From: Callorhinchus milii
Taxonomy: Eukaryota
Assembly: GCF_018977255.1 (NCBI RefSeq)
Contig: NW_024704990.1
Span: 1 to 64,000, forward strand
DNA: 64,000 nucleotides
Reading direction: 5' to 3'
In this document: positions 5,111 to 61,950 of the stretch, one piece after another
How the letters are laid out: each line of letters starts with the position of its first letter
Position numbering within the stretch: the stretch's first letter is position 1
The notes under the pieces: generated by a model
What the model was told of the DNA's origin: nothing
The model's database searches: none
Seen by the model: the letters and a program-made list of their open reading frames with translations, nothing else
Made by a program: the position numbers and the translations under genes

Positions 5111-5250
5111 GGGGGTGGGTGGGGAGGGGGGAAGAGTGAAAATGTTGACTATCCACCGAGATGTCGGCACAGGCAATATTCACCAAACGGCCTGGGGGAG
5201 AGGGGGGGGAGAGGGCGGAGAGGGGGTATAACGTGATTATTTTTGTTCAG

Positions 5251-5361
5251 TTACCAGAGAGTTTTGGACCATTTGTTGGAATTAAGCGCGAAACACAGAG
5301 ACAAGTATCGCGTCATCGTGGCCACTCACAATGAACACTCGGTTCAACACACTCTTGGCAG
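5251..5361 (+). CDS. PRODH2: Hydroxyproline dehydrogenase, internal coding exon
   Basis: ttcag|T TAC...AG|gtggg, phase 2/2. Encodes YQRVLDHLLELSAKHRDKYRVIVATHNEHSVQHTLG, including the ATHNE motif. Confidence 0.92.
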
Positions 5362-13250: not shown

Positions 13251-13770
13251 GTATGTCACTGTCTCTGTCACTGTGTGTCACCGTACGTGTCATTGTGTGT
13301 GACTGTGTCCGTCTCTGTCACTGTGTTTGTCACATGTGTGGCACCGCGTGTGGCACTGCCGGTGCGTGTCGGTGTCTTTGTCACTGTGTGTGGGGGTCAC
13401 TGTATCTGTCCAAGTGTCTGCATCTGTGTCTGTCCTCTCTTCTCCGTTTCTGTAACGGTGACACAGGAGGGTGTGGTGTAGTGACTGTTCACTGAGTCGC
13501 AGGGTGTGGTGACTGTTCGCTATGATGCAGCCCGTTGTAGAGACTATTCGAGGAGTAGTAACTGTTCGAAGTGCAGTATGTGTTCGAGGTGTTCACTCGC
13601 TGATGCAGTGACTGTTGTTGTGACAGAGACATGGTGTGTTGTAGTGACTGTTATTGTGACACAGGCGCGGCGTAGTGTGGTGACTGGTATTGTGACACAG
13701 ACGCGGGGCAGTGCAGTGACTGTTACCGCGCCACAGATGATGCGGTGTAGTAACTGTTATTCTGACGCAG

Positions 13771-13958
13771 GCATGGCCGGCTACATGGTGTACAAGTCGC
13801 TGCCCTACGGAGCGGTGGACACAGTGATCCCGTACCTCGTGCGCAGAGCTCAGGAAAACCAGGCCGTTCTCCAGGGAGTGAGACAGGAGCAGAAGCTACT
13901 GCGGAGAGAACTGCGTCGGAGATTCCGACTGCCGGGCGCTCGAACTACGCCTTCCTGA
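13771..13958 (+). CDS. PRODH2: Hydroxyproline dehydrogenase, last coding exon
   Basis: gcag|GC ATG...TGA. Encodes MAGYMVYKSLPYGAVDTVIPYLVRRAQENQAVLQGVRQEQKLLRRELRRRFRLPGARTTPS*. YKSxPYG and YLxRRAQEN are PRODH2-type motifs. Confidence 0.93.
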
Positions 13959-14107
13959 ACCGTCCCATCAGCCGATCAGCCCCCGAGGATCACAGCGGGA
14001 ACGGGCAGGAGGTCCGGCGGCATCCAATAGGAGAGGGAAATTAGTTAACGATTTAGGTCGATCGCCTACAGTCTGAAGAAACATTATCTTGGCTCAGTCG
14101 GCTGTGC

Positions 14108-14428
14108 GGAGTCCTGCAGCTCAGTGGTTAGAGCACTCGCTTTGCGAGCGACTGACCCGAGTTCAATTCCAGGCAGAGGGCGAAACCTCGGGCAAGTTTC
14201 CTTACTCCGCACAGAGCCTAATAATAATCCCTCCACAACCAAAAACAATAATAAATTGGTCATTTTCAATCTACGACTGTTTGTGGGACATTGCTGTGCG
14301 CAATTGGCTGCCGCGTTCGCCCACAAATATACAGTCAATTCGCTTTACAGTGTGTTCTGCGGAGCGCTTTGGGACGTCCTCCCGACGTGAGAAGCGCTAT
14401 ATCAAATGCGAGGATTATTATTATTATT
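14108..14428 (+). mobile_element. Full-length tRNA-derived SINE (Deu-like core, L2-type 3' tail)
   Basis: tRNA-like head with A and B boxes (AGCTCAGTGG; GAGTTCAATTCC), core TTGCTGTGCGCAATTGGCTGCCGCGTT, 3' stem-loop and (ATT)n tail. Confidence 0.9.
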
Positions 14429-21749: not shown

Positions 21750-22452
21750 CTTTGAGAGGTGGAGAGTGCAGCCTTGGATGCTGATGCTGTCAGCGCCTGA
21801 GGTGCGTAGGCGCTGATGCGAGCCAATCAGGAGGGCCACGGTTTTGCGTACGTTGAGCTGAAGAAAGTTGTCTCTCGTCCAGGACTCGATGTCGGACAGG
21901 CAGCTGTCAGGACATCGGTGGTCGTGGAGTTGAGGGTAGAGGAGGAAAGGGAGAGTTGGGTGTCATCCGCATACATGTGGAAGTTAATCATATTTCTGCG
22001 GATGATGTCACCACAGGGGGAGCGTTTTGAGGGTGAAGAGGAGGGGACCGAGGACAGAGCCCTGAGGGACACCGCAAGACACAGTGCGGGGGTGGAGGAA
22101 AAGCCTTTGCTGGAAACAAAATGAAGAGAGTGGGAGAGGTGCGACCTAAACCACTCAAGAACAGGACCTTGAAGGTTGAGGTGGGAGGACAAGCGGTGGA
22201 GGAGGATACCGTGGTCGACCGTATCGAAATGCTGCCGATAGGACGAGGAGGACGAGGAGGCAGAGGGAGCCCTGGTCACAGATGGTCAGGATGTCAGTGG
22301 TGACCTTGACCAGGGCAGTTTCTGTGCTATGGGCAGCACGGAAACCTGACTGAAGGGGTTCGAATAATGAATGGGTGGAGAGGAAAGAGCACAGCTGTGT
22401 GGCGATAACTCTTTCAAGGACCTTGTACAGGAAGGTGAGGTTGGAGATGGCT
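21750..22452 (-). mobile_element. Internal L2 RT fragment
   Basis: Encodes ISNLTFLYKVLERV...[21 protein letters not shown] and [11 protein letters not shown], with frameshifts. Confidence 0.9.
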
Positions 22453-31476: not shown

Positions 31477-32628
31477 AACGAATATTTATGAAACAGTCTG
31501 ATATCTGGTTAGCGGAATTGGCGTTATTTCCTGCAGATTTGGCTGATTTTATTTTCTAACACTAAGAAACGTAACTCAATATCCATTCATATATTTTTTT
31601 AATTTATTCGCATTACACAACTAATTCCAGACGGCCTCATTCGCTTGACCTGTAAGGCAGACCAGTAACTTGGGGCAGGAAGACATCCCACTCAGCGCCT
31701 GTTAAGCAAGCAAGCCATGGTCCACACTAACAGGACATTCTGCATGAGTCCCTGCAACCTGGCTTTCGCCCACTGTAATAAGTCTTTCCTGATCCAAAGC
31801 ACCAATAATAATAGTAATACTAATAATCCTCGCATTTCATATTGCGCTTTTCACGACTGCTAGGCGTCTCAAAGCGCTTCACAGAATAAGCTGTAAAGCG
31901 AATTGACTCTACATTTTTGGGCGTGACATTCTCTCCATCTTTCAGTTCACTTTGTTTCCTGTTTCTCATCCATCTCTCTGCCGCCTTGGATAGCGCTGAA
32001 TAGACAATCCTTCCCCACCACTCACTTACAGATCCTTGATTCTGTCCTATTCTCGTCTCACGATTTTCGCTCTCATCTCACCTATCCACGTTGGCTCTCA
32101 AAATGTGTTCTCCACTCGACCTCGCACAGGCAAAAGTGCTCTTCCATAGGGCCCTATTCTCAATTTTCTCCTCTTTCTCTATGTTTGCTCTAACAGCGAC
32201 GTCATGTGTAAGCACTGGGTTCACTTACACATGTCAATGGTATGATTCCTTCAAACAGTGCGGGGCTTGAACCACTGTCACTGCTCTCGCATCTGACTCA
32301 GGCTGAAAAACAAGGCTAGAGAAGAAGTCAAGGCGATAAGAGAGTATGCAGATGAGAAGTACAAAATGATACTAGAAATGAGTGGTTTGGCCTATGCGAC
32401 TGTAGGAAGTGGGACATATTTCGTTAGAACAAATAAGATACGCGGTGACCTGATAGACGTCTTCGAAATGAATAAGGGATTTTGATTTAGTTCCACTACA
32501 ACACATTCCCTTTATCAGCTCAAACGTTTTCTCCACCCATCCACGCCAGGTCAACTGTGGTATACCTTAGGCCTCCAACCTTGTACACCTCCTCTTCCTC
32601 ATCTACATGCTCCATATTGGCTGCACCT

Positions 32629-33237
32629 GACTATGGGAACTCTCTCCTCGCCGGCCTTCCCGCCACCTCCCTCCACAAGCTTCAGGTCATTCAGAACTCT
32701 GCAGCTCGTGTACTGTCCCGCACCAGGCTTCGGGACCACATCACTCCCACCCTCGCTCGCCTCCACTGGCTCCCCATCCCCCAGAGGATTGATTTCAAGA
32801 TCCTCATCCTCACCTACAAGGCCATTCACGGCCTTGCTCCCTCCTACCTCTCCGACCTACTACCCCCCTACCTACCTGCCCGTACCCTCCGTTCCTCTGG
32901 CTCCGGTCTGCTCCACGTCCCCCGCCCCAACCGCCCTACTATCGGTGGTCGGGCCTTCAGCCTCTCAGCCCCCAGGCTCTGGGACTCTATCCCCCAGTGC
33001 CTTCGCCGCTTCCTCCCTTTCCTCCTTCAAGGCCGGTCTCAAAATCTTTCTCTTTGACCGAGCCTTCAGCTCCCCTCTCGACTCTCTTCCCCCTCCTCGC
33101 TCCCTCCCTTCCCTCCCCTCACCCTGACCATTTCCCCCCCCTGCTCGGGTCATGACCCAACTGTGCAGCGCCTTGGGACGTCCTCCTGACGTGAAAGGCA
33201 CTTTATAAATGGAATCTTGTTGTTGTTGTTGTTGTTG
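32629..33237 (+). mobile_element. 5'-truncated L2 LINE, 3' end
   Basis: Encodes [29 protein letters not shown]...[15 protein letters not shown]; ends in the stem-loop and (GTT)n tail. Confidence 0.92.
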
Positions 33238-36533: not shown

Positions 36534-38473
36534 ATGCATCGACAGGCATTCATCCTTCCAATAACTTACATTTATTATCCCATCCTCGCAGCCCTTTAGG
36601 GACCCAGTAAGTGCTAAGAATCAAGAAACATTGAGCAAAACATGTAGCGGTTCTGATAACATAACATTTATGTTATGTAATCGGTCAATGTAGCATCTCC
36701 ACCACACTGCAGTGGAACGACATGCTTGGAAACCATAACCCTCTGACTCAGAGGCCAACAGAGCAGATACATAATGCTGCAGGACACGCTCCCGTGCTGA
36801 GAACTGGAGCAGGTGATGCAGAGACGGTGTGAGGGAGAGATTGAGGGGTAATATAGTGAAGTTTCCTGCAACCACATCGAATTCACCGTCGTCTTGCCAG
36901 GTTGGTGGCAGCCTGGCTCAACTGGTAGCAATCTCACATATATTTCAGAAAGGTGAGATCCAAGCCCCACATCACGACTGTGAACATAATGGTCGACACG
37001 ACATGAAGCAGTTCATGGTCTACTCTGCTAGGCGAGCTCCTAACCACGAGACAGTAAACTACCCCCCAAAAGGATTTGATAAGGTTAGCATCAATAATCT
37101 GTTCACACAAAATGGGGAGTGCGTAACCAGGAGAAAAAAAGAATAGTAAATTGACTTCAAAGGGAATTTATGAAGAATTACTTCACTAGTGAGAATGCCG
37201 ATCTCACTGCCATAAGTGGAGATTGAACAAAATGCAAGATAGAGAGGTGAGGGAGAGTGGAATATATGGGTATGTAGAAAAGTGAACGAAGAGTCGGGAA
37301 GGGGACTAATGTGGAATATAAACAATGACAAAGAAAGGTTTATTCGAGTATCCTGTTTCTGTGCTTGCAGTCTTTTATAAGTCTATGTGAAGAACCTGTG
37401 AAAGAAATTGTCTTTTCATCCCAGTCCAGCCTGTCCTGATTGTGGAGTGAAATGCAGCAAATTTCTAATTCCTTTGGTTTGCTCCCAATTATCAATATAC
37501 CTGGTTTCTAAAGATTAAAGTGGCAATTGCTAAACCTGTATTCTCTCTTTCTCTTGCAGCAAACCTAGTGGCCATCGTGATTCTGTACAGAGGAAAGTGC
37601 GTTCTCTCCAAATGCGTCACTCGCTACCTGGTGGCCATGGCAGCGGCGGATCTGATGGTGGTGATATTTGATGTGATATGTTACCACACTGAATACATTT
37701 ACTTTGCCACCACGGAGGTGAATATCACCCCGGTTTGCCGTGTCAATGTACTTCTATTTAAGGCCTCCACAGATTGCTCTGTGTGGTTCACAGTTGCGTT
37801 TACCTTCGATCGCTTCATAGCCATTTGTTGGCAAAAGCTGCAAACCATATTTTGTACTGAAGAAACCGCGGTCAAGGTGATCGGCACATTATTTATCATA
37901 AACTGTTTGAGGAGCATTGGTGATTATTTTATATTTGGTCCTCGCTACGTTATTAACAACGTCTCATGGGGCTGTGTCCACACTGAGAGCTTTAACTTGT
38001 TGCTAGGATGGAAAATCTATGCCTACTTTATATACATTTGGAATCCTTTGCTCCCATTCCTGTTGATTCTGCCCTTGAATGCGTTGACTGTCAGACACAT
38101 ACTGGTGAGCAGCAAAGTCCGTGCAAAACTCCTGTCGGGCAATTTTGCAGCGAAACGGAAGGATCCGGAGATGGAGTGTCGCAGGAAGTCCATTATTTTA
38201 CTCTTCGCTGTTTCAGGCAGTTTTATCCTCCTCTGGATGACTTACGTGGTCAATGGTATATACGGCCGAATCACGGCAAACTACTATTACACAGGTCTCG
38301 ACGATCCGCTGTTCATCAGACAAGAAGTGGGGATTATGCTCCAGCTTTTCAGCTGTGGCACAAACACGTGTATTTATGCGGTGAGCCAGAGGAAGTTCAG
38401 AGAGGAGCTCAGAAATGGTGTGCTCTTTCCATTCGCTCAATTTCTAAAACTAAAAGCCAGGGTGATGCATTGA
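36534..38473 (+). pseudogene. GPR139/GPR142-like GPCR: exon 1 (36534-36606) has an in-frame TAG, exon 2 (37560-38473) is fully open
   Basis: Exon 1 MHRQAFILPITYIYYPILAAL*GP|gtaagt. Exon 2 NLVAIVILYRGKC...AAADL...TFDRFIAICWQK...DPEMECRRKSIILLF...TNTCIYAVSQRKFREEL...RVMH*. Confidence 0.85.
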
Positions 38474-38819
38474 ATGAAATCTGTTACGGTTTTCCAATTA
38501 CTTTCTTTGGTCAGTTAGCCACGATTGTGATCCGCTAGTTTCTGCGCTGTGCTGTGAGGAGAAAGATGATAATAATTCTAATCATCCTTGCATTTAATGT
38601 CGTGCCTTATCACGACTCCGAGAAAATGCAAATCGCTTTCCAGAATATACGGTAATGTGCACTGACGATATATTTTGTGGGCGAAACGCAGGAGCCTATT
38701 GTACACAGTCGTGAATTGTTTCACAAACTATTATATTGTCTTTTTCTTATGGAGGGATTGTTATCCCCAAAAATATGATCTGCCAGTCTATCAAGCGATT
38801 TCCTGCTTTCTGATGGGGA

Positions 38820-39198: not shown

Positions 39199-39886
39199 AA
39201 CAACAACAACAACAACAAGATTCCATTTATAAAGCGCCTTTCACGTCAGGAGGACGTCACAAGGCGCTGCACAGTTGGGTCATGACCCGAGCAGGGGGGA
39301 AATGGTCAGGGTGAAGGGAGGGAAGGGAGGGAGCGAGGAGGGGGAAGAGAGTCGAGAGGGGAGCTGAAGGCACGGTCAAAGAGAAAAGTTTTGAGACCGG
39401 CCTTGAAGGAGAAAAGGGAGGAAGCAAGGCGAAGGCATTGGGGGATGGAGTTCCAGAGCCTGGGGGCTGAGAGGTTGAAGGCCAGACCACCGATGGTAGG
39501 GCGGTTGGGGGACGTGGAGCAGACCAGAGCCAGAGGAACGGAGGGTACGGGCAGGTAGGTAGGGGGATAGTAGGTAGGAGAGGTAGGAGGGAGCAAAGAC
39601 GTGAAAGGCCTCGTAGGTGAGGATGAGGATCTTGAAATCAATCCTCTGGGGGATGGGGAGCAAGTGGAGGCGAGCGAGGGTGGGAGTGATGTGGTCCCGA
39701 AGCCTGGTGCGGGACAGTACACGAGCTGCAGAGTTCTGAATGACCTGCAGCTTGTGGAGGGAGGTGGTGGGAAGGCCGGCGAGGAGAGAGTTCCCATAGT
39801 CCAGCCTTGAGGTGACAAAGGCGTGAACCAGGGTTTCAGCAGCGTGAGGGGTGAGGTAGTGCCGTAATCTGGCGATAATCCGGAGG
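39199..39886 (-). mobile_element. 5'-truncated L2 LINE, 3' end
   Basis: (AAC)n tail, stem-loop and L2 C-terminal coding sequence, nearly identical to the other young copies. Confidence 0.92.
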
Positions 39887-40571
39887 CGTCTCTGTACTGA
39901 CCCTGTGTGTGGGACAGAATCGACAAGAACTATTGCCGTCTAACTTGACACAGCACAGCAGTGATGGGATTCTGCTGCATTGCTGGAACTGATGGCTATC
40001 TGTTTGAAATGTTAAACAGCGGTTAAATTTCCTTGTTTCAGTGAACATTATAACTCACGTGGCACTACTGGTAAATGGAAGAGATTGTCTTCCAACAAAA
40101 CTATCGAGATGAATTTGATAATTTGATTAATGCCGTTTTATTGAGGATTCTGTCGCCTCCAAAATTCACTGTAACTCCACTAAGTTAAATACGTTAGATG
40201 GAAACTAAACGGATCGGCCCGGTAACGGCAGGTGAAGGAACTCGCAGAGACAAGGGAGGTGATAACTTGAGAGTTGCTGATATGAAAGAGAAATTACTAC
40301 ATTTCAAAGAAAATCCTGTGAAGTTTTTGCAGACATTACTCCTAATTGAAAGTAGCTCTGACAAATAGTACTATTGTTATGTATTATTTTCGACCATTTT
40401 GATTGAGCAGAGCCGACATTTTGAGATGACGGGACAGCGTAAGTTGTCCTGAGAAAATCAGCAACAATAGCAACATTGCATTTTTATAGTGCCTTTCACG
40501 TCGGAAGGACGTTGGGCTATATTGGGGATGTGTGCTGAGTTATGCTGCGGTGTGAGAGCTGCGATACACTA
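39885..40571 (+). repeat. Circularly permuted copy (order X-Y) of 43071-43758
   Basis: X = 39885-40512 (GGCGTCTCTG...GGAAGGACGT); Y = 40513-40571 (TGGGCTAT...GATACACTA). Confidence 0.92.
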
Positions 40572-40786: not shown

Positions 40787-40859
40787 GGCGCCGTGGCTTA
40801 GATGGCAAAGCGTCTGTCTAGTAAACAGGAGATCCTGGGTTCAAATTCCAGCGGTGCCT
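40787..40859 (+). tRNA. TRT-AGT: tRNA-Thr(AGT), possibly impaired
   Basis: GGCGCCGTGGCTTAGATGGCAAAGCGTCTGTCT-AGT-AAACAGGAGATCCTGGGTTCAAATTCCAGCGGTGCCT is close to vertebrate tRNA-Thr-AGT and folds as a cloverleaf. A T6 run lies at 40889-40894. C61 is changed to T. Confidence 0.85.
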
Positions 40860-46472: not shown

Positions 46473-49400
46473 CAACAACAACAACAACAACAAGATTCCA
46501 TTTATAAAGCGCCTTTCACGGCAGGAGGACGTCCCATGGCGCTGCACAGTTGGGTCATGACCCGAGCAGGGGGGAAATGGTCAGGGTGAGGGGAGGGAAG
46601 GGAGGGAGCGAGGAGGGGGGAAATGCTCAGGGTAAGGGGAGGGAAGGGAGGGAGCGAAGAGGGGGAAGAGAGTCGAGAGGGGAGCTGAAGGCTCGGTCAA
46701 AGAGAAAGGTTTTGAGACCGGCCTTGAAGGAGGAAAGGGAGGAAGCAAGGCGAAGGCACTGGGGGATAGAGTTCCAGAGCCTCGGGGCTGAGAGGCTGAA
46801 GGCCTGACCACCGATGGTAGGGCGGTTGGGCGGGGGACGTGGAGCAGACCGGAGCCAGAGGAACGGAGGGTACGGGCTGGTAGGTAGGGGGATAGTAGGT
46901 CGGAGAGGTAGGAGGGAGCAAGGCCGTGAATGGCCTTGTAGGTGAGGATGAGGATCTTGAAATCAATCCTCTGGGGGATGGTGAGCCAGTGGAGGCGAGC
47001 GAGGGTGGGAGTGGTGTGATCGCGAAGCCTGGTGCGGGACAGTACACGAGCTGCAGAGTTCTGAATGACCTGCAGCTTGTGGAGGGAGGTGGCGGGAAGG
47101 CCGGCGAGGAGAGAATTCCCATAGTCCAGCCTTGAGGTGACAAAGGCGTGGACCAGAGTTTCAGCAGCGTGAAGGGTGAGGTAATGCCGTAGTCTGGCGA
47201 TGTTCCGGAGGTGATGGAAGGCGGTGCCAGTTGTGGTGCTGATGTGAGGGAGAAAGGACAGCTCAGGGTCGAACAAAACGCCGAGGTTGCTGACTGGCTT
47301 TGCGAGGTGCAGAGTGCAGCCTTGGATGCTGATGTTGTCAGCGCCTGAGGTGCGGAGGCGCTGACGTGAGCCAATCAGGAGCGCCTCGGTTTTTCGCACG
47401 TTGAGCTGAAGAAAGTTGTCTCTCGTCCAGGACTCGATGTCGGACAGGCAGCCTGTCAGGACATCGGTGGTCGTGGAGTTGAGAGTAGAGGAGGAAAGGT
47501 AGAGTTGGGTGTCATCCGCATACATGTGGAAGTTAACTCCATGTCTGCCGATGATGTCACCAAGGGGGAGTATGTAGAGGGTGAAGAGGAGGGGACCGAG
47601 GACAGAGCCCTGAGGGACACCACATGAGACAGTGCGGGGGCTGGAGGAGAAGCCATTCGTTGAGACGAAATGAAGACGGTGAGAAAGGTACGACCTGAAC
47701 CATTCAAGGACAGTGCCTTGAAGGTTGAGGTGGGAGGACAAGCGGTGGAGTAGGATAGCGTGGTCGACCGTATCGAATGCTGCCGATAGGTCGAGGAGGA
47801 CGAGGAGACAGAGGGAGCCCTGGTCACAGATGGTCAGGATATCATTGGTGACCTTGACCAGGGCAGTTTCTGTGCTATGGGCAGCACGGAAACCTGACTG
47901 AAGGGGTTCGAAAAGAGAATGGGTGGAAAGGAAAGAGCGCAGTTGGGAGGCGACAACTCTTTCCAAGACCTTGGAGAGAAAGGGGAGGTTGGAGATGGGC
48001 CGGTAACTTGATAGCTGCGACGCATCAAGGGAGGGTTTTTTCAGGGTGGGCGTGATGATGGCAGTTTTTAATGGAATGGGGACAGAGCCAGAGGAGAGGG
48101 ACAGGTTGATGATGTCAGTGATATGTGGGGCAAGAAAGTGGAGCTGGGAGATAAGGAGTGGAGTGGGGATGGGGTCAAGGGAGCAGGTGGTTGGTTTTAG
48201 GGATTGGATGAGTTCAGTGAGAGAGGGTGGGGAAACGGGTACGAAGGTGTGTAGGGGAGGATGGGTAGGAGTCGGAGTGTGGGAGGGAAGGGGTGGGTGG
48301 TGGGTGGAAGTTGGAGGGGAAGTGACCGCGCAGCGGATTCCCTTGATCTTGGATTCAAGGAAATCCAGCATCTCCTCGCAGTGAAGGTTGGAGGAGATGA
48401 CCTGTGCGGGGTGGCGGGGGGGACGGAGGAGTCGGGTTGTGGTGGAAAACAGTAGCCTGGGGTTGTTCTTCGCCTCCAGGATTATCCTGGAGTAGAAGGA
48501 CGACTTGGCCGAGGCTAGAGTGGAGCGGTAAATTTTGAGGAGGTCCAGCCAGATTTGTCGGTGGACCGTTAGGCCAGATTTGACACAGGTGCGTTCAGCA
48601 GCCCGCACCTGGCTTTTCAGTGAGCGGAGGTGGGTGGTGTACCAGGGGGAGGAGCGGGAGTAGGAGACAGTCCGGGAAGTGATGGGGGCAAGAGTATCGA
48701 GTGTGGAGGAGAGGGTATTGTGTAGGAGGGAGGGAGGAGAAGAGGGGTCAGTAAGGGTTGAAGGCCAGAGGGAGAGGAGTTCAGAGGACTCCAAGGCATC
48801 GGTTAGGGATTGTGGGGGTAACTTCTTCCAAGGGCGGTAGAAGATGGTGGTGGGTCTGGTGGAGGAGGGGAGGGGGGTGGAGGTGGTGAAGGAGATGAAG
48901 TGGTGGTCAGAGATGGCCTTGTCGGTAATAGTGACATCCGAGACACTGAGGCCCCGGGTGATCACCAAATCGAGTGGGTGGCCGTGACTGTGAGTGGGGG
49001 AGTTGATGTGTAAGGAGAGGTTGAGTGAGGAGAGCAGGGAAGAGAAGTCTGTGGAGATGGAGCAGGAGGGGGTGAAGTGTAGGTTAAAGTCGCCCAGGAT
49101 GATGAGGCGATCGGAGCAGAGGCAAAGAGATGTGAGGAGTGTTGAAATGTCAGAGATGAAGGTGGGAGAGGTTTTAGGGGGCCGGTAGAGGAGGAGGATT
49201 TTAAGGGAGAGGAATGAGGGGTGGGAGAGGGTGAGGTGCTCAAAGGAGGGGAAAGAGCCAGTGGAGTAGGGGGATAGGGCAAGTGGTGTCCTTGAGAAAA
49301 GGGCAACACCACCGGCACGGCGGTTGGGGCGGGGGATGTGGTGGGAGGTGTAGCCGGGTGGCGTGGCCTCCGTGAGGGGGAAGGTGTCGCCTGGGGTGAG

Positions 49401-50040
49401 CCACGTTTCAGTCAAGGCCATGATATCAACGTTCTCATCAAGGATGAGATCGTTGATGACCAGGGCCTTGTTGCAGAGGGAGCGGACATTTTGCAGTCCG
49501 ATGTGGAGGGAGCGGTTGACAGAAGGCTGTGTGGGGAGGAAGGGGGGTCCAGGTTGTGAGGCAGGAGTGGGGGGAATGGGGATGAGGGAGGAGAGGTTGA
49601 CTCCCCGGGTCTGTGGCCGGGGTGGGTGGCGAGTGTGGTGGGGAATGGGGCAGTCGGTGTGGCTGCTGCTGGACAGCCAACGCCGAGTGCCACGGTGAGC
49701 CCGGCGGAGGATTCCCAGGCTGGAGCAGAGGGAGGTTGTGGGAGGGTCAAGTGGGGATAGAAGACGAGAAGGACGGAGAGAGAGGAGGAGAGAGCGGGAG
49801 AGATGCAGAGGGGGGAGGGTTTGGGGGGAGAGAGGAGGGGGGAGGGAGGGAGGGGGTGAGGGGGCTCGGGTCAAAGCGGCAGCCATAGTGCGCACGCGGG
49901 GACCGGGAGCGAGCGGTCAGGTGGATGGCATTATCCCGTAGATCGGGGCAGCGAACCCAGCAGGACCAGAGTGGGCTCTGATGTGAGCCCCGGGGGGGGG
50001 GGGCGCAGAGGGTTTTTTTTTTTTTTTTTTTTTTTTTGTG
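46473..50040 (-). mobile_element. Near-full-length single-ORF L2 non-LTR retrotransposon (APE endonuclease + RT)
   Basis: ORF from ATG 49886 encodes the APE ([27 protein letters not shown]) and RT ([31 protein letters not shown]). There is a 1-nt deletion at about 46828-46830, a stem-loop and an (AAC)n tail. The 5' boundary is uncertain. Confidence 0.93.
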
Positions 50041-51814
50041 CGCGCGCACGTACCTGAAAACTAATCTATGACGTCGCAGTTCCCCGCTCCGTCCCCTCCC
50101 CTGCCTACCTGCACTCGCTCCGGCGTCGAGTTTAAGTACCTGGGTCAGTACCTACGTCAGTAAACCAAAACAGTGGAATCTCCCCGTCCAACAAAGAAGC
50201 CAAGAGCCGAGCGTCACACACAAGATAGTTGATTAATGTTGGGATCTGATATCACAGCGCTGACTGGTTGTCCATGAACTCAACCCGAGTCCTCTCTACC
50301 AGGTCAGTTGGACTTTGTACATTCTGTGACACCTCTTGGAAAAGGAAAACAAGGTTTTGGCAATTTACTGGGTAAAAGTCCATAAGGTGATTGGAGTAAT
50401 ATCGTCAGACAGTCATGGAGCGTGGCACACCATATGCGATGAGCATCCCTACTTAACTCTCCTCATGATTACTGTCAACTGCAGGGATTCAGCAGTTAAT
50501 AATCTGTGCATTTGAAGTAACATCATACCACTTCTTGGAGACACTTCAAAGTACTTCTACGACGATGCTATGACTTGAATTGACAGTATATCTTGTGCAG
50601 CCAACTGCAGATTACAACATCCAACAAACAGTTGTGGATTCACTGACGAAATTATTAAAAAAATGTTCAAGGGATCAAGTACCCCAGAATAGTGATCTGC
50701 CAATTGACCTAGAAACGGTTACTTCACTGCTTGGTGTGGAGTAAGGAAATATGATTTGGAGAAATGCCACACTGATATTATTTCTAATTTAAAATCATAT
50801 TATTTTCTTGTCAGATGTCAACTCGTTTCTTCTCGCCTTGTCTTGGAGGAGTGTAACTGCCCTTAAATTTCACTGGGCTCCGTCTACAGCAGCCCTTGCC
50901 ATCCGGTTCCTCATCCAAATGATCACTTCATGTCTGACTTGAAACCACAAACCAGCACATCAAGACATTCCCGATCATTAAACTATTTGATCAACTACAA
51001 AGGCTGTGATTTCAGTAAATCTTGGGAATGGATGTTGTAAGGAATACTACTAGAAATGTGCTTAAAGCTGAATTTACACATATATTTTCCGTGAGCTCGA
51101 AGACAAATATGACTGGATCCAACATCCAAAGAATTTTGTAGGAGAGAGCTCCATATCTCCAAGACTATTTTTTTCACTCCAAAGTATATGATCTCTAATG
51201 ATACTGTTGTGCCACTCGTTCTAGATTCCCCCAATAGAGGATACAGTATTATTTTTTGGCTAGGAAATGCACAGTGAAATACATTTTGTGAAGCGCTTTG
51301 CGACTTAATTACCTAATAAGACATTTAGTCAAATAGAAGGATTATAATAATAATTAATTAATAATTAATCGGAATTGGAAGACGAAACAAGTGCGAGATC
51401 TATCCATTTCGTCTTCCCCCATCCTCGCATTCGCTTGCAATAATAATAGCGTGTAATATTCCAAATAACAGACCGTGAACCCAGGTTTCATTTTCTGAAG
51501 AATCCAATAATAATAAATAATTTCTGCTTCCACCATCATCCCATGGAGCCTGTTCCGTATTCTTATTACTCACTCCCTGAATTGGTGATTCCACAGATAT
51601 ATATTGAATATACCCCTCACCACTCCTCCATCGTACCGCACACAGGCACACACGCACTCACAGATTCTCAGACAAACACATACAGTGAAGCAATTGGTTT
51701 CAGAGTCAGCGCGAGTATCAATAGTATTGAGTGTTATATTAATATTAGTTTGCTGTAAATGCTGAGTATTAAGATGCTATCATTGATTATTGATCTGTGC
51801 AGGTCAGAGGGTGT

Positions 51815-51895
51815 GCGACACGTGATTCCCGTCAGTACTGCAGCTATTGGCCGTTTATCAAACCTCTGCCCCACTGGCACTTGTTAAATAGCGGT
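51815..51895 (+). promoter_or_regulatory. Putative VH promoter
   Basis: E-box CACGTG 51819-51824, reverse CCAAT (ATTGG) 51846-51850 and TATA-like TTAAATA 51884-51890, about 90 nt before the leader ATG. No ATGCAAAT/ATTTGCAT octamer seen. Confidence 0.5.
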
Positions 51896-51981
51896 CACTG
51901 GGGATTGTGGCTATCTGTCCGGCTGCTCTCTGTCTCTCCGTTATTCGACATAAGTCTCAGTCCTGAGAAGTGGCCAGAAAC

Positions 51982-52027
51982 ATGAAGTCCCTGATTTCTC
52001 TCAGTCTGCTGCTGGCTGTCTTCTCCC
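51982..52027 (+). CDS. IGHV: IgH leader exon
   Basis: Encodes MKSLISLSLLLAVFS, then C|gtgagt. Phase 1 joins the V exon, giving H-VQS. Confidence 0.9.
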
Positions 52028-52145: not shown

Positions 52146-52448
52146 ATGTTCAATCCGGTGCGGTGATGACACAGCCGCCGACTCTCATCGGGAAAACCGT
52201 CCAGGCCCTGAGACTGACCTGTAGAATCAGCGGGTTTAATCTCGCCAACTACTGGATGCACTGGAAACGGCAGTTTCCCGGGAAGCAGCGGGAAAATTTC
52301 CTCGCTTATTTCAGCTCAAGCAACTACTTCGAGTCCGAGATTGAAAACCGCGTCACTGTCATCAAAGATACCTCCAAAAACATCTTCGATGTGATCATCA
52401 AAAGCCCGACAGTGGAGGATACAGCCACCTATTACTGTGGAGCAAGAT
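52146..52448 (+). CDS. IGHV: IgH V exon with VHH-like FR2
   Basis: tacag|AT GTT. Encodes VQSGAVMTQPPTLIGKTVQALRLTCRISGFNLANYWMHWKRQFPGKQRENFLAYFSSSNYFESEIENRVTVIKDTSKNIFDVIIKSPTVEDTATYYCGAR. Both Cys, the core Trp and DTATYYC are intact. Confidence 0.95.
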
Positions 52449-52487
52449 CACAGTAAGAGGAAATCTGGCTAAACCGCTACAAAAACA
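52449..52487 (+). promoter_or_regulatory. V 3' RSS (23-bp spacer)
   Basis: CACAGTA - 23 nt - ACAAAAACA. Confidence 0.92.
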
Positions 52488-52952
52488 GAAGGGGAGGAAA
52501 GCAGCCCCTCCCATCCTAAATAGACTGATGGACATCCACGGTGTCAATGCTTGTCTGCAGCCAAGTTTGAAGGAAAAGCTGAAGACGGATTTATTATCAG
52601 ATTAAACCGATACTGTAAATGCTTGTTTGATTGGTGTGAATGAGTTGCTTATTTGTGCTGTAATTTTCTGTGATTTCAGAAAGACAGTGACACTGTGCTG
52701 CTGAGCTGGGAAGGACTGCGATTGGAGACTATCTCTGTGACGATCCACAACCATCATCTGGTTTAAAGATGTTGGAAACAATTGTTTTCTGTTTCAGTGG
52801 GATATGAAGAACAACGGGACAAACTCTGTGTCATATCAGAGGAGAATAGTCCCTCTCAGTGAATTCTGCCATCCAGTATTGAGCTGACATTGGCGGCGGG
52901 GGAGTTGGGGGGGGGGGGGGTTTGGTAGGGCGGTGCGGTTGGGGCGAGATTC

Positions 52953-53030
52953 AGTATTTGTAAGGGAGTGTGTCACTGTGTATACAGTGGGTCACAATGC
53001 TGCGTACAGCAGCACCATCATACAAAAACC
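52953..53030 (+). other. IgH D1 segment (12-RSS / 22-RSS); coding 52981-52992 TATACAGTGGGT
   Basis: AGTATTTGT-12-CACTGTG | D | CACAATG-22-ACAAAAACC. The D resembles the shark D1 core TACAGTGGG. Confidence 0.92.
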
Positions 53031-53334: not shown

Positions 53335-53403
53335 AGTTTGTGACCCAGAGTATATTATTGTGTATCTACCTGGACCACAGCATTAACTGTCAATACAAAA
53401 ACC
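53335..53403 (+). other. IgH D2 segment (12-RSS / 12-RSS); coding 53363-53375 TATCTACCTGGAC
   Basis: AGTTTGTGA-12-TATTGTG | D | CACAGCA-12-ACAAAAACC. Confidence 0.85.
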
Positions 53404-53737: not shown

Positions 53738-53823
53738 GGTTGTTACAGTGGGCAGCCACTGACTGTAGCACAGTGACTACGCAGACTACTGGGGACAAGG
53801 CACCAAGGTCACTGTGACTGACG
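53738..53823 (+). CDS. IGHJ: IgH J segment (coding 53776-53823) with 5' 22-RSS
   Basis: GGTTGTTAC-22-CACAGTG, then YADYWGQGTKVTVTD G|gtaagc (WGxG motif). Confidence 0.92.
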
Positions 53824-55100: not shown

Positions 55101-56102
55101 TTTCGAAATATGAATGTAAACTTGCTTTACTGCTGCAATGCAATGCAGCGTCATTGAAAGCAAACCCCCGGACACCGACTTCTGTCGTTATTTAACCTTT
55201 TCGGTGCAGCTGTGAGAGAACAGTACTCTAAAAGTGCCTATTCCTGTGTCTCTATTTGGGGCTGGGAAGCAGTTTTTGCAAGTTCCGCTGATCATAATCC
55301 CCAATCAGACATGATTCCGAAAGGCTTGTGCTCAGCACGACACAAATTAGAGTCCTTCATTTCTCATGTAAACACTGAGCATTATATGATCTCTACAGTT
55401 TAGCAGTTAAAAATTTAGCAGGAACCAACATTCGTCAAAAGTCAAACAAATATTTTTACCCAGAAAATATGTGGTCAATTGACTTCACAGTGTACTAAAT
55501 GAAGAGAAATGTCTCGAAGAAGTGATAAGGCGCTATTCCAATCGCACGATTTTTTATTATTAGCATAAATAATTAATATACTATTTTAAAACCAAACAGC
55601 GGCTGTCAGGTGGTAAATTGTGTGCGGCGATTCTGTACCTAATCTGAAAGTTTAGTTTAGGCGATTCTGTACCTAATCTGATTGTTTTAATCAATGTCAG
55701 AAACTTAATGATTCACGCTTAAAGTTTTCCGACGATTGTATTAACATGAGATTAACATTAAGATTTTCCGCAGGTCTCAATAATCTTGAAATAAGTATCT
55801 ATTGGCAATCTAAATAGAAAATTTGGAAATTCGAGCAAAATTTTAATTTCAGCCACTTTTCTAAATTAATCTTGAAACAAAGTTACTCGGATGAAAACCA
55901 GTAAATATCTGAGTGCTTTAGGCATTATTTTCAGGCATTGTTTCATGAAACAATATCTGTGAGTTTATATTTAAATTGTTGCAATATTGAGACGTGATCT
56001 TTCGTTAAAGCTTGCATCTTTTTTATTTAAATGGGAATCTTCTATGAAAAGAGAAAATCAATACAGATTGGCAAAAAGTGCCCTGGTGGGTGCGGAGGGA
56101 GG

Positions 56103-56215: not shown

Positions 56216-56370
56216 NNNNNNNNNNNNNNNNNNNNNNNNNNNNNNNNNNNNNNNNNNNNNNNNNNNNNNNNNNNNNNNNNNNNNNNNNNNNNNNNNNNNN
56301 NNNNNNNNNNNNNNNNNNNNNNNNNNNNNNNNNNNNNNNNNNNNNNNNNNNNNNNNNNNNNNNNNNNNNN
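56216..56370. other. Assembly gap (155 N) in the J-C intron
   Basis: N run. Relevant because it could hide sequence if its size is underestimated. Confidence 0.95.
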
Positions 56371-57021: not shown

Positions 57022-57351
57022 ATAATATGCCACCTGTACCGTCGCCCCCAGTTGTTATTCTCACACAGTCTTCCCCTGAAGACATCGTAATGCACAACTT
57101 GGTCACTGCTGTCTGCTTCGTATCTGGGTTCCATCCGGACAAACTCAGTGTTAAATGGCTGAAGGATTGGCAGTCCATCACCTCAGGTGTGGTGAACTAT
57201 CCTTCGGTTAAAGAAGACAACGGTACATTCAGCACCAACAGCCGCCTGACTGTCCCCGCCAGTGAGTGGAGGAATGGCACTGTGTACACCTGCCAGGTGT
57301 CCCATGAACCCACCCAGACCATCATTGCCAAGAACATCACCAAGTCCTCAG
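57022..57351 (+). CDS. IGHM: First constant exon, Cmu2-like (not CH1)
   Basis: tacag|AT AAT...TCA G|gtagg. Encodes NMPPVPSPPVVILTQSSPEDIVMHNLVTAVCFVSGFHPDKLSVKWLKDWQSITSGVVNYPSVKEDNGTFSTNSRLTVPASEWRNGTVYTCQVSHEPTQTIIAKNITKSS. VILTQSS, FHP, WLKD, NGTFS and SRLTVPA are shark Cmu2 signatures. Confidence 0.9.
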
Positions 57352-57522
57352 GTAGGAGCCACAGCAACAGCTGATACATATTGCAACAGTTTTGCTTTCA
57401 TGTCTGCGTTCAGCTCACCCAGAACCTGAGAATATTCAAGGATAATCTTTCTTTAACTTGTCGAATATGAAATTCTGGATATTGACTGCTATTTGTGTTT
57501 CTAAGTTTCCTTTCTTTTCTAG

Positions 57523-57834
57523 AATGCGAGAATCCCTCTGGAGGTGTCAAGATCTATTTGCTGCCACCTGCACAACGCCAAGTTTTGATGGAATCCTCTG
57601 TAACGTTAACATGTGTAGTGGCTAATGCACCACTTCACGTCAACGTGACTTGGACATAAGAAAATACACATTTACAGTCTGGATATGTGAATCCCTCTGC
57701 CACTGATCCTCAGGAAGTAATCAGTAAATTAAACATTTCTACAGAAGCCTGGAACAGTGGGAAGTAATTCTTCTGTATAGCCAGCCATGGTGGTATGCGG
57801 ACCCCCATCAGAGAACAGATATTTAAGAAGATAG
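57523..57834 (+). pseudogene. IGHM: Cmu3-like exon with two in-frame TAA stops (57657-57659, 57765-57767)
   Basis: ttctag|AA TGC...ATA G|gtgagc. Encodes [101 protein letters not shown]. Confidence 0.92.
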
Positions 57835-58236
57835 GTGAGCAGACATGTTTCAGGAAATAAATGATTTTTGTTAATATTTAATTTCAGATTGTAGGCCACA
57901 AATCAATACAAAAATGTGAAAAAATAGTAAACTGTCGGTGTGTAGATCATCCCCCTTTTATAGAGGCCAGAAAAATATATAGGTCTACGTTTTTTGTACA
58001 AAATCTCACACGAATACTATCCAAAATAATCTAATCATTATATCTGTGGCATGTTTATGCAGGTCCTCTGGGATTTAAGGTCCCCACATCTAAACCGTTG
58101 GTCATCGGGTGCAAATAATAGTAATGTTAAGCGGTTTCAATCCACACGAGTGTTCCCAGTCACACGAACTTGTATTTCAAAGTTTTCACGGATTGAACCC
58201 TATCAGTGTATTGATTTGAATGTGTTCTTCCCACAG

Positions 58237-58628
58237 TTGAGCACACGAAACAACCTTCAGTGTATCTCCTCCTGCCTTCGGCAGAAGAATTGGCTGCTCA
58301 GCCGTCTGTCACCCTCACCTGCTTGGTGAAGAACTTCGCTCCCAAAGAGATATTTGTGCAGTGGACTGTGAATGACCAAGTGATTGATTCCAGTAACTAC
58401 CAGAACACTGATGTGATGGCAGATAGTGCGAGTCGCAACTACTCCACGTACAGCATGTTGTCCATTTCAGCCGAAGATTGGGACAGAGGAAACTCCTACT
58501 CCTGTGTGGTCGGACATGAAACTTTCCCACTGAAGACCCTGACCAGATCCGTTAATAAATTCAGCGGTAAAACGAGTTTTGTAAATATTTCCGTTGTTTT
58601 GAAGGACACCGTGAATGCTTGTGAATGA
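58237..58628 (+). CDS. IGHM: Cmu4 exon plus secretory tailpiece (membrane-form donor after 58566)
   Basis: acag|TT GAG. Encodes EHTKQPSVYLLLPSAEE...TCLVKNF...YSCVVGHETFPLKTLTRSVNKFS G|gtaaa. Tail GKTSFVNISVVLKDTVNACE* has an N-glycosylation site and a penultimate Cys. Confidence 0.95.
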
Positions 58629-58717: not shown

Positions 58718-58723
58718 AATAAA
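58718..58723 (+). terminator. Poly(A) signal of the secreted form
   Basis: AATAAA 90 nt after the tailpiece stop. Confidence 0.65.
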
Positions 58724-60978: not shown

Positions 60979-61109
60979 ATTTTCCAACCGAGATGATGCT
61001 GGAAGGCTTTCAAGAAATTCAATGTGATAATCTCTGGCCCACTGCTTCCACCTTCATCATCCTCTTCTTCCTGAATATATTGTACAGCGCCACCGTGACG
61101 ATAATTAAC
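60979..61109 (+). CDS. IGHM: IgH transmembrane exon TM1
   Basis: aatag|AT TTT...AAC|gtgagg. Encodes FPTEMMLEGFQEIQCDNLWPTASTFIILFFLNILYSATVTIIN, with the CART motif (LW..ASTF..LF....YS..VT). Confidence 0.9.
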
Positions 61110-61266: not shown

Positions 61267-61592
61267 GGAGTCCTGTAGCTCAGTGGCTGGAGCACTTGCT
61301 TTGCAAGCAAGACACCTGGGTTCAATTCCAGGCAGGGCGAAACCTTGGGCAACTTTCCTTACTCCACACAGAGCCTAATAATAATCCCTCCAAAAACCCA
61401 AAACAATAATAAATTGGTCATTTTCAATCTACGACTGTTTGTGGGACATTGCTGTGCGCAATTGGCTGCTGCGTTCGCCCACAAATATACAGTCAATTCA
61501 CTTTACAGTATATTCTGTGAAGCGCTTTGGGACGTCCTCCCGACGTGAAAAGCGCTATATCAAATGCAAGGATTATTATTATATTATTATTA
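61267..61592 (+). mobile_element. Full-length tRNA-derived SINE in the TM1-TM2 intron
   Basis: Near-identical to the 19682 copy. Confidence 0.92.
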
Positions 61593-61941: not shown

Positions 61942-61950
61942 GTAAAATAA
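61942..61950 (+). CDS. IGHM: IgH TM2 exon (VK*)
   Basis: Long pyrimidine tract TTTACTTTTATTTTCCAG|GTA AAA TAA. AATAAA at 62565-62570 is a candidate poly(A) signal. Confidence 0.78.
   Translation, partial: VK

Follow-up and report, generated by a model that had tools for sequence, protein, structure and literature searches.

An immunoglobulin heavy-chain cluster of the IgM type in Callorhinchus milii carries two in-frame stop codons in its Cmu3 exon and is otherwise open wherever it can be read, and we regard it as a member of the Cmu1-less IgM lineage that was probably inactivated recently, leaving either a young non-processed pseudogene or a null allele. The cluster lies within a 64,000-nucleotide stretch of DNA that was analysed as a whole (the window), and the exon in question occupies 57523..57834 on the + strand. 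A sequence-only reading of the same DNA had proposed that Cmu3 alone is broken and had offered two explanations, a recently dead cluster or a working gene that skips the damaged exon to yield a V-Cmu2-Cmu4 mini-antibody. The premise is true for all readable sequence of the cluster. Recent death fits everything that was found (stops in a constitutive exon with strong canonical splice sites, an intact remainder of the gene, no clear acceleration of any exon, and one stop unshared between sequence sources); for the mini-antibody we obtained no positive evidence, and the strong Cmu3 splice sites, the similar branch lengths of the C exons and a non-significant excess of damage in Cmu3 (p 0.17-0.23) all tell against it.

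The cluster is an unrearranged minilocus in the order V-D1-D2-J-Cmu2-Cmu3-Cmu4-TM1-TM2, with every element on the + strand, and it shows the features of a cartilaginous-fish IgM-type V-D-D-J-C minilocus except for the four Cmu exons, of which Cmu2, Cmu3 and Cmu4 only are present. The leader exon (51982..52027) encodes MKSLISLSLLLAVFS plus one phase-1 base and ends at a gtgagt donor. It is followed by a V exon (52146..52448) with a V-set domain in which Cys22, Trp36 and Cys92 are preserved, and then by the V recombination signal (RSS, 52449..52487), which consists of CACAGTA, a 23-base spacer and ACAAAAACA. D1 with its signals spans 52953..53030; the segment proper (52981-52992) reads TATACAGTGGGT and is flanked by a 5' RSS-12 and by a 3' RSS with a 22-base spacer (CACAATG ... 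ACAAAAACC). Similarly, D2 with its signals spans 53335..53403, the segment proper (53363-53375) reads TATCTACCTGGAC, and an RSS-12 lies on both sides, the 3' one being composed of CACAGCA, a 12-base spacer and ACAAAAACC. J with its 5' RSS occupies 53738..53823, including a 22-base spacer, a heptamer at 53769-53775 and a coding part at 53776-53823 that encodes DYADYWGQGTKVTVTD plus a phase-1 G, after which comes a gtaagc donor. The chain as a whole obeys the 12/23 rule (V23 > 12-D1-23 > 12-D2-12 > 23-J), with spacers of 22 bases at the 3' side of D1 and at J. A further candidate D segment at about 52690 was rejected, the systematic RSS scan having returned a weak 5' RSS (52683-52689) and no 3' RSS. 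Neither octamer, ATGCAAAT or ATTTGCAT, occurs upstream of the leader (51700-51981), an absence that does not count as damage here; the sole octamer of the window is at 38626.

Downstream of J, the Cmu2 exon (57022..57351) is an open C1-set exon that joins J in frame (...VTVTD-DNMPPVPSPP...). The Cmu4 exon with the secretory tail (58237..58628) is likewise open; its tail, which ends in GKTSFVNISVVLKDTVNACE before a TGA at 58626-58628, has an N-glycosylation site and a penultimate Cys. Poly(A) signals are present, with an AATAAA at 58718 downstream of Cmu4. A membrane-form donor inside Cmu4 (G/gtaaaa, after 58566) gives access to TM1 (60979..61109), which encodes DFPTEMMLEGFQEIQCDNLWPTASTFIILFFLNILYSATVTIIN, and to TM2 (61942..61950), which adds VK and then a stop. 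Thus the statement that the leader, V, J, the other C exons, the tail and both TM exons are open was confirmed on readable sequence. In fact, about 410 codons outside Cmu3 stay open with their conserved residues preserved, the canonical Cys and Trp are kept in every domain, and all splice sites of the cluster are canonical.

The exception, Cmu3, is a phase-1 exon bordered by an acceptor at 57523 (ttttctag/AATGCG) and a donor after 57834 (ATAG/gtgagc). Read in frame from 57525, it encodes CENPSGG...VNVTWT, a stop, ENTHLQSGY...AWNSGK, a second stop, and FFCIASHGGMRTPIREQIFKKI. The first stop is a TAA at 57657..57659 (between WT and EN), where paralogues have Q or, rarely, K or N; the second is a TAA at 57765..57767 (between SGK and FFC), where paralogues have E or V. 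The earlier placement of both stops at Q and E sites therefore holds, with the addition of V at the second. Homology to paralogue Cmu3 extends over the whole length of the exon, at 65-81% identity to holocephalan IgM Cmu3, and the leading 44-residue piece alone gives a Pfam C1-set match. The stops are thus in frame and in a constitutively spliced, clear C1-set exon.

A second sequence source bears on whether both stops belong to the locus. The best database matches of the cluster are ten UniProt/Ensembl Callorhinchus milii models (P0001-P0004 and P0063-P0068; accessions A0A4W3GBH7, GC02, GAG9, GAG4, GQ05, GCA5, GA81, GPP7, GAP0 and GBS3), and since they carry translated intron sequence identical to the window they represent this very locus. 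Each of them runs from V into J across the RSS heptamers and passes from J directly to Cmu2. All ten read WTQENTHL across the first stop, giving Q where the window has TAA 57657, and all ten route round TAA 57765 by means of invented introns. Because every model avoids it, TAA 57765 exists in two sequence sources. We considered whether the Q might be an artefact of translation and rejected this, the models having avoided TAA 57765 and each having been translated from its own genome sequence. The models thus appear to lend independent support to TAA 57765 only and to contradict TAA 57657, which may reflect allelic variation, a very recent mutation or an error. All ten "Ig-like domain-containing protein" entries of the locus are annotation artefacts that route round a stop. 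Half of the models (P0001, P0002, P0004, P0065 and P0066) also include a second Cmu4 exon (SAQQ...) that is absent from the window; it differs by three residues (A>S, P>Q, E>D), and a one-base deletion runs its tail past the stop, which suggests a nearby duplicated and putatively also damaged Cmu4.

These models also provide an argument for a different account, in which the stops are not fixed in the species, one or both being an error or an allele, and many animals encode a working heavy-chain-only IgM of Cmu2-Cmu3-Cmu4 structure. The Q in all ten models, the intact remainder of the gene and protein-level rates equal to those of the sister paralogues are each in keeping with it. We nevertheless judge it unlikely, since the same ten models must avoid TAA 57765, placing that stop in two sources, and since Cmu3 carries four further changes at positions that are invariant in 18 paralogues (D80A, D95G, P97R and K103Q), three of the four after TAA 57765. 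For a recently inactivated copy, which we favour, TAA 57657 may count as contrary evidence if it is an assembly error or an allele. Its absence from the second source can also mean that damage is still accumulating or segregating, and hence that it is recent. Similarly, an intact remainder is what would be expected if the inactivation were recent, although a still-used gene would look identical.

In the recent inactivation that we propose, the cluster would have been knocked out by nonsense mutation in Cmu3. If the copy were rearranged and transcribed, Cmu3 would be spliced in normally, its strong splice sites making inclusion the default, and translation would end 175 or 67 bases short of the final exon junction. 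According to the exon-junction rule, a stop this far before the last junction marks an mRNA for decay. The mRNA would then be a target of nonsense-mediated decay, any protein made would be cut down to V-Cmu2 plus a piece of Cmu3 unable to fold, and the copy would be predicted to lack function in the sense of giving no antibody. Non-processed Ig pseudogene clusters exist in cartilaginous fish among many working paralogues. The window copy resembles these in its full cluster structure and its few disabling mutations; nothing essential differs, its one particularity being membership of the Cmu1-less lineage.

That membership rests on three lines of evidence. First, a tblastn search of the whole window with six IgM chains from holocephalans and sharks found no Cmu1. 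A run of 155 N within the J-Cmu2 intron (56216..56370) was left unfilled and has flanks without an Ig-domain frame; a six-frame reading of this intron, with these 155 positions (about half a C exon of about 310 bases) unread, gave no open Ig-like frame. Nor was a second, duplicated Cmu2 exon found in the readable sequence, where tblastn finds a single Cmu2-type exon. The stretch at 55257-55337, tried as an extra C exon, was dismissed as a chance match (E 0.9 to 6.6, upstream half of the domain missing). Second, FR2 of the window V reads WKRQFPGKQRENFLAY, as compared to WVRQVPGKGLEWLL in conventional C. milii and Hydrolagus chains, so that the former VL interface at Kabat positions 37, 44, 45 and 47 is K, Q, R and N in the window versus V, G, L and W in the conventional chains. 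Like FR2 sequences are found in C. milii P0028/P0043 (WYRQLPGKQQENLL) and in P0037 (WYRQLPGKQRDQLL), an old UniParc entry, probably a ratfish sequence, where a rearranged VDJ leads straight into a Cmu2-like domain. Third, in a tree of V domains the window groups with single-domain-type V genes, apart from the conventional ones (ultrafast bootstrap 93). The lack of Cmu1, the polar FR2 and the V phylogeny together place the cluster in the holocephalan Cmu1-less, heavy-chain-only-type IgM lineage, and at the level of sequence it is thereby shown to be assignable to this already described lineage with a VHH-like hydrophilic FR2.

Such a background lends some appeal to the idea that the gene is alive and that Cmu3 is skipped, either constitutively or through nonsense-associated altered splicing, to give an in-frame V-Cmu2-Cmu4 chain. 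With no Cmu1 and a polar V interface a light chain would be unneeded, and everything but Cmu3 is open and recombination-competent. The arithmetic of the splice is also as the sequence-only reading had it. The last base of Cmu2 (57351) and the last base of Cmu3 (57834) are both G and the first bases of Cmu4 (58237) are TT, so that GTT (V) is formed at the normal and at the skipped junction alike and a 57351 to 58237 splice reads KSS-VEHTKQ in frame. Likewise correct are its remarks that skipping would remove the Cys of ECENP and leave the tailpiece Cys (secreted form) or the TM-spacer Cys (membrane form). It is through one of these that the skipped chain would be held together as a short heavy-chain-only antibody, a product that we regard as highly improbable. 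Ig C exons share phase 1 as a general property, and any of them could be skipped in frame; the compatible phases therefore carry no weight in favour of skipping. The Cmu3 splice sites, reported earlier as canonical, proved to be not only canonical but the strongest among the C exons, neither weakened nor mutated. The pyrimidine fraction of the acceptor is 0.83 for Cmu3 versus 0.56 for Cmu2 and 0.67 for Cmu4, the Cmu3 donor is the consensus, and nothing in the splice signals favours skipping.

The concentration of both stops in Cmu3 had been put forward as suggestive, the exon making up only about one-fifth of the coding length. The proportion stands, Cmu3 holding 21% of the nonsense-mutable positions, but the coincidence does not exceed chance: two stops would land together with a probability of 0.045 if Cmu3 is named beforehand and of 0.20 if any single exon will do. 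Damage at conserved sites gives a comparable picture. Of the sites that never vary among the other sequences, the window differs at 6/42 in V, 1/30 in Cmu2, 4/44 in Cmu3 and 1/31 in Cmu4, and the nominal excess in Cmu3, a point in favour of skipping, is not significant against Cmu2 and Cmu4 combined (4/44 versus 2/61, Fisher p 0.23). The same is true at sites conserved in at least 85% of sequences (8/64 versus 9/143, Fisher p 0.17). This excess, not significant though it is, counts against a plain reading of recent death as well.

Rates of change point in the same direction as these counts. Terminal branches estimated for the window copy on a fixed tree are 0.127 for Cmu2, 0.155 for Cmu3 and 0.109 for Cmu4, close to the corresponding branches of the sister lineage P0022 (0.122, 0.112 and 0.108), and in none of the C exons do three-way relative-rate counts with sister paralogues show an imbalance. 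There is, in these tests of rate and constraint at the protein level, no sign of a Cmu3 that was freed from constraint long before the other exons. The absent acceleration fits recent death and is not proof of it. Moreover, one stop is unshared between the two sources, which indicates recent decay rather than an old, settled arrangement. Queries with V-J-Cmu2-Cmu4 and with Cmu4 alone returned no skip junction and no closely matching fragment derived from a transcript among their matches in a set of 5.8 billion proteins, the matches being gene models and older cDNA entries. This counts little against skipping, as the set apparently lacks transcript-derived C. milii proteins; with no such entries even for conventional IgM, a missing skip-junction protein is uninformative. 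Taken with the splice signals and the chance calculation, these results make a live gene that skips Cmu3 very unlikely in our estimation.

Precedents for a shortened chain were also considered. Domain-deleted IgM is natural, and nurse shark IgM1gj, which the sequence-only reading had cited, is a real IgM heavy chain with three constant domains, which indicates that a domain-deleted IgM can work. As a parallel for skipping the precedent fails, because IgM1gj lacks Cmu2 rather than Cmu3 and its missing domain is absent from the germline gene, not skipped. IgM1gj also keeps Cmu1, pairs with a light chain and is germline-joined; in the window, V, D and J are unjoined, Cmu1 is absent, and Cmu3 is present but broken. 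In camelid heavy-chain-only IgG the CH1 exon is present but skipped, the cause being a mutated donor splice site. The window exon proposed for skipping differs in having intact, strong splice sites. The camelid chains do resemble the window in having no CH1 in the mature chain and a hydrophilic FR2 at positions 37, 44, 45 and 47, and the hypothetical V-Cmu2-Cmu4 chain would share their layout of V plus two C domains (PMC3149040). The existence of such a chain, to which nothing points, would add a small antibody format to those known in nature, and a chimaera antibody of camelid-like layout would represent a third independent route, an outcome to which we attach hardly any credence.

We also considered that the copy might be an old pseudogene whose other exons were kept healthy-looking by gene conversion from working clusters. 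The Ig clusters of cartilaginous fish are many and similar, and Cmu4, with up to 85-87% identity to paralogues, is indeed somewhat closer to them than are Cmu2 and Cmu3, at about 80%. At 80-87%, the best paralogue is nearly identical in none of the exons, so there is no recent conversion tract. Furthermore, unique changes persist in FR2 and, against the common paralogue consensus, in the tail (S112F, P116T and L123V). Accordingly, we rate this possibility too as very doubtful, and recent inactivation is preferred.

The lineage to which this recently inactivated copy is assigned has been described from the spotted ratfish Hydrolagus colliei, in which "holocephalin HCAb" is the product of a Cmu1-less IgM cluster (Rast et al. 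1998 as described in Flajnik, Deschacht and Muyldermans 2011, PMC3149040). CH1 loss in that cluster goes together with duplication of the CH2 exon, and the product is predicted to be a light-chain-free homodimer, the protein itself being unexamined (PMC3149040). Anumukonda et al. 2022 is cited beside Rast for the same holocephalan system. Like the ratfish cluster, that of the window is a chimaera minilocus of IgM type without a Cmu1 exon between J and Cmu2; as in P0037, a Cmu2-type domain follows its J in frame, its FR2 has Q44, R45 and a polar residue 47 as in P0037 and C. milii P0028/P0043, and its V groups with the V genes of these same entries at the bootstrap of 93 given above. Unlike the ratfish cluster, which has a duplicated Cmu2 in place of Cmu1, the window has a single readable Cmu2; its Cmu3 has stops, and its position 37 is K, not Y. 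In the model of another C. milii locus (P0019/P0024), the end of one Cmu2-like domain is followed directly by a full Cmu2 domain, a duplication of the ratfish type.

The stops themselves describe one disabled copy in a multigene family and matter mainly for annotation. The lack of Cmu1 and the VHH-like FR2 change what the Cmu3 finding means, and this context is more valuable than the stops: the elephant shark has IgM clusters, related to the ratfish gene, that lack Cmu1 and whose V interface is VHH-like, and the cluster in the window shows a single-Cmu2 layout. Earlier publications seem to cover this Cmu1-less IgM context of the elephant shark already.

Several other features were seen in the window. 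Three exons on the + strand (2040-2160, 5243-5360 and 13770-13890) match successive portions of the Pfam proline dehydrogenase domain, with very long stretches of CT/CA-rich low-complexity DNA (GC skew down to -0.86) between them; several N runs lie at 15.7-17.7 kb. An intronless open reading frame of 317 residues at 37520-38473 (+) belongs to the rhodopsin-type receptor family (7tm_1, E 7e-16). On the - strand, 46581-49895 holds a full-length non-LTR retrotransposon open reading frame of 1104 residues with endonuclease and reverse transcriptase, and several 3' fragments, apparently of the same retrotransposon family, occur at 263-955, 32557-33127, 39306-39926 and 21827-22279. A tRNA-Ala(tgc)-like sequence in the TM1-TM2 intron (61270-61339, +), with a related copy near 14089-14200, probably represents a SINE of tRNA origin rather than a functional tRNA gene. 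In addition, a tRNA-Thr(agt) was called at 40787-40859.
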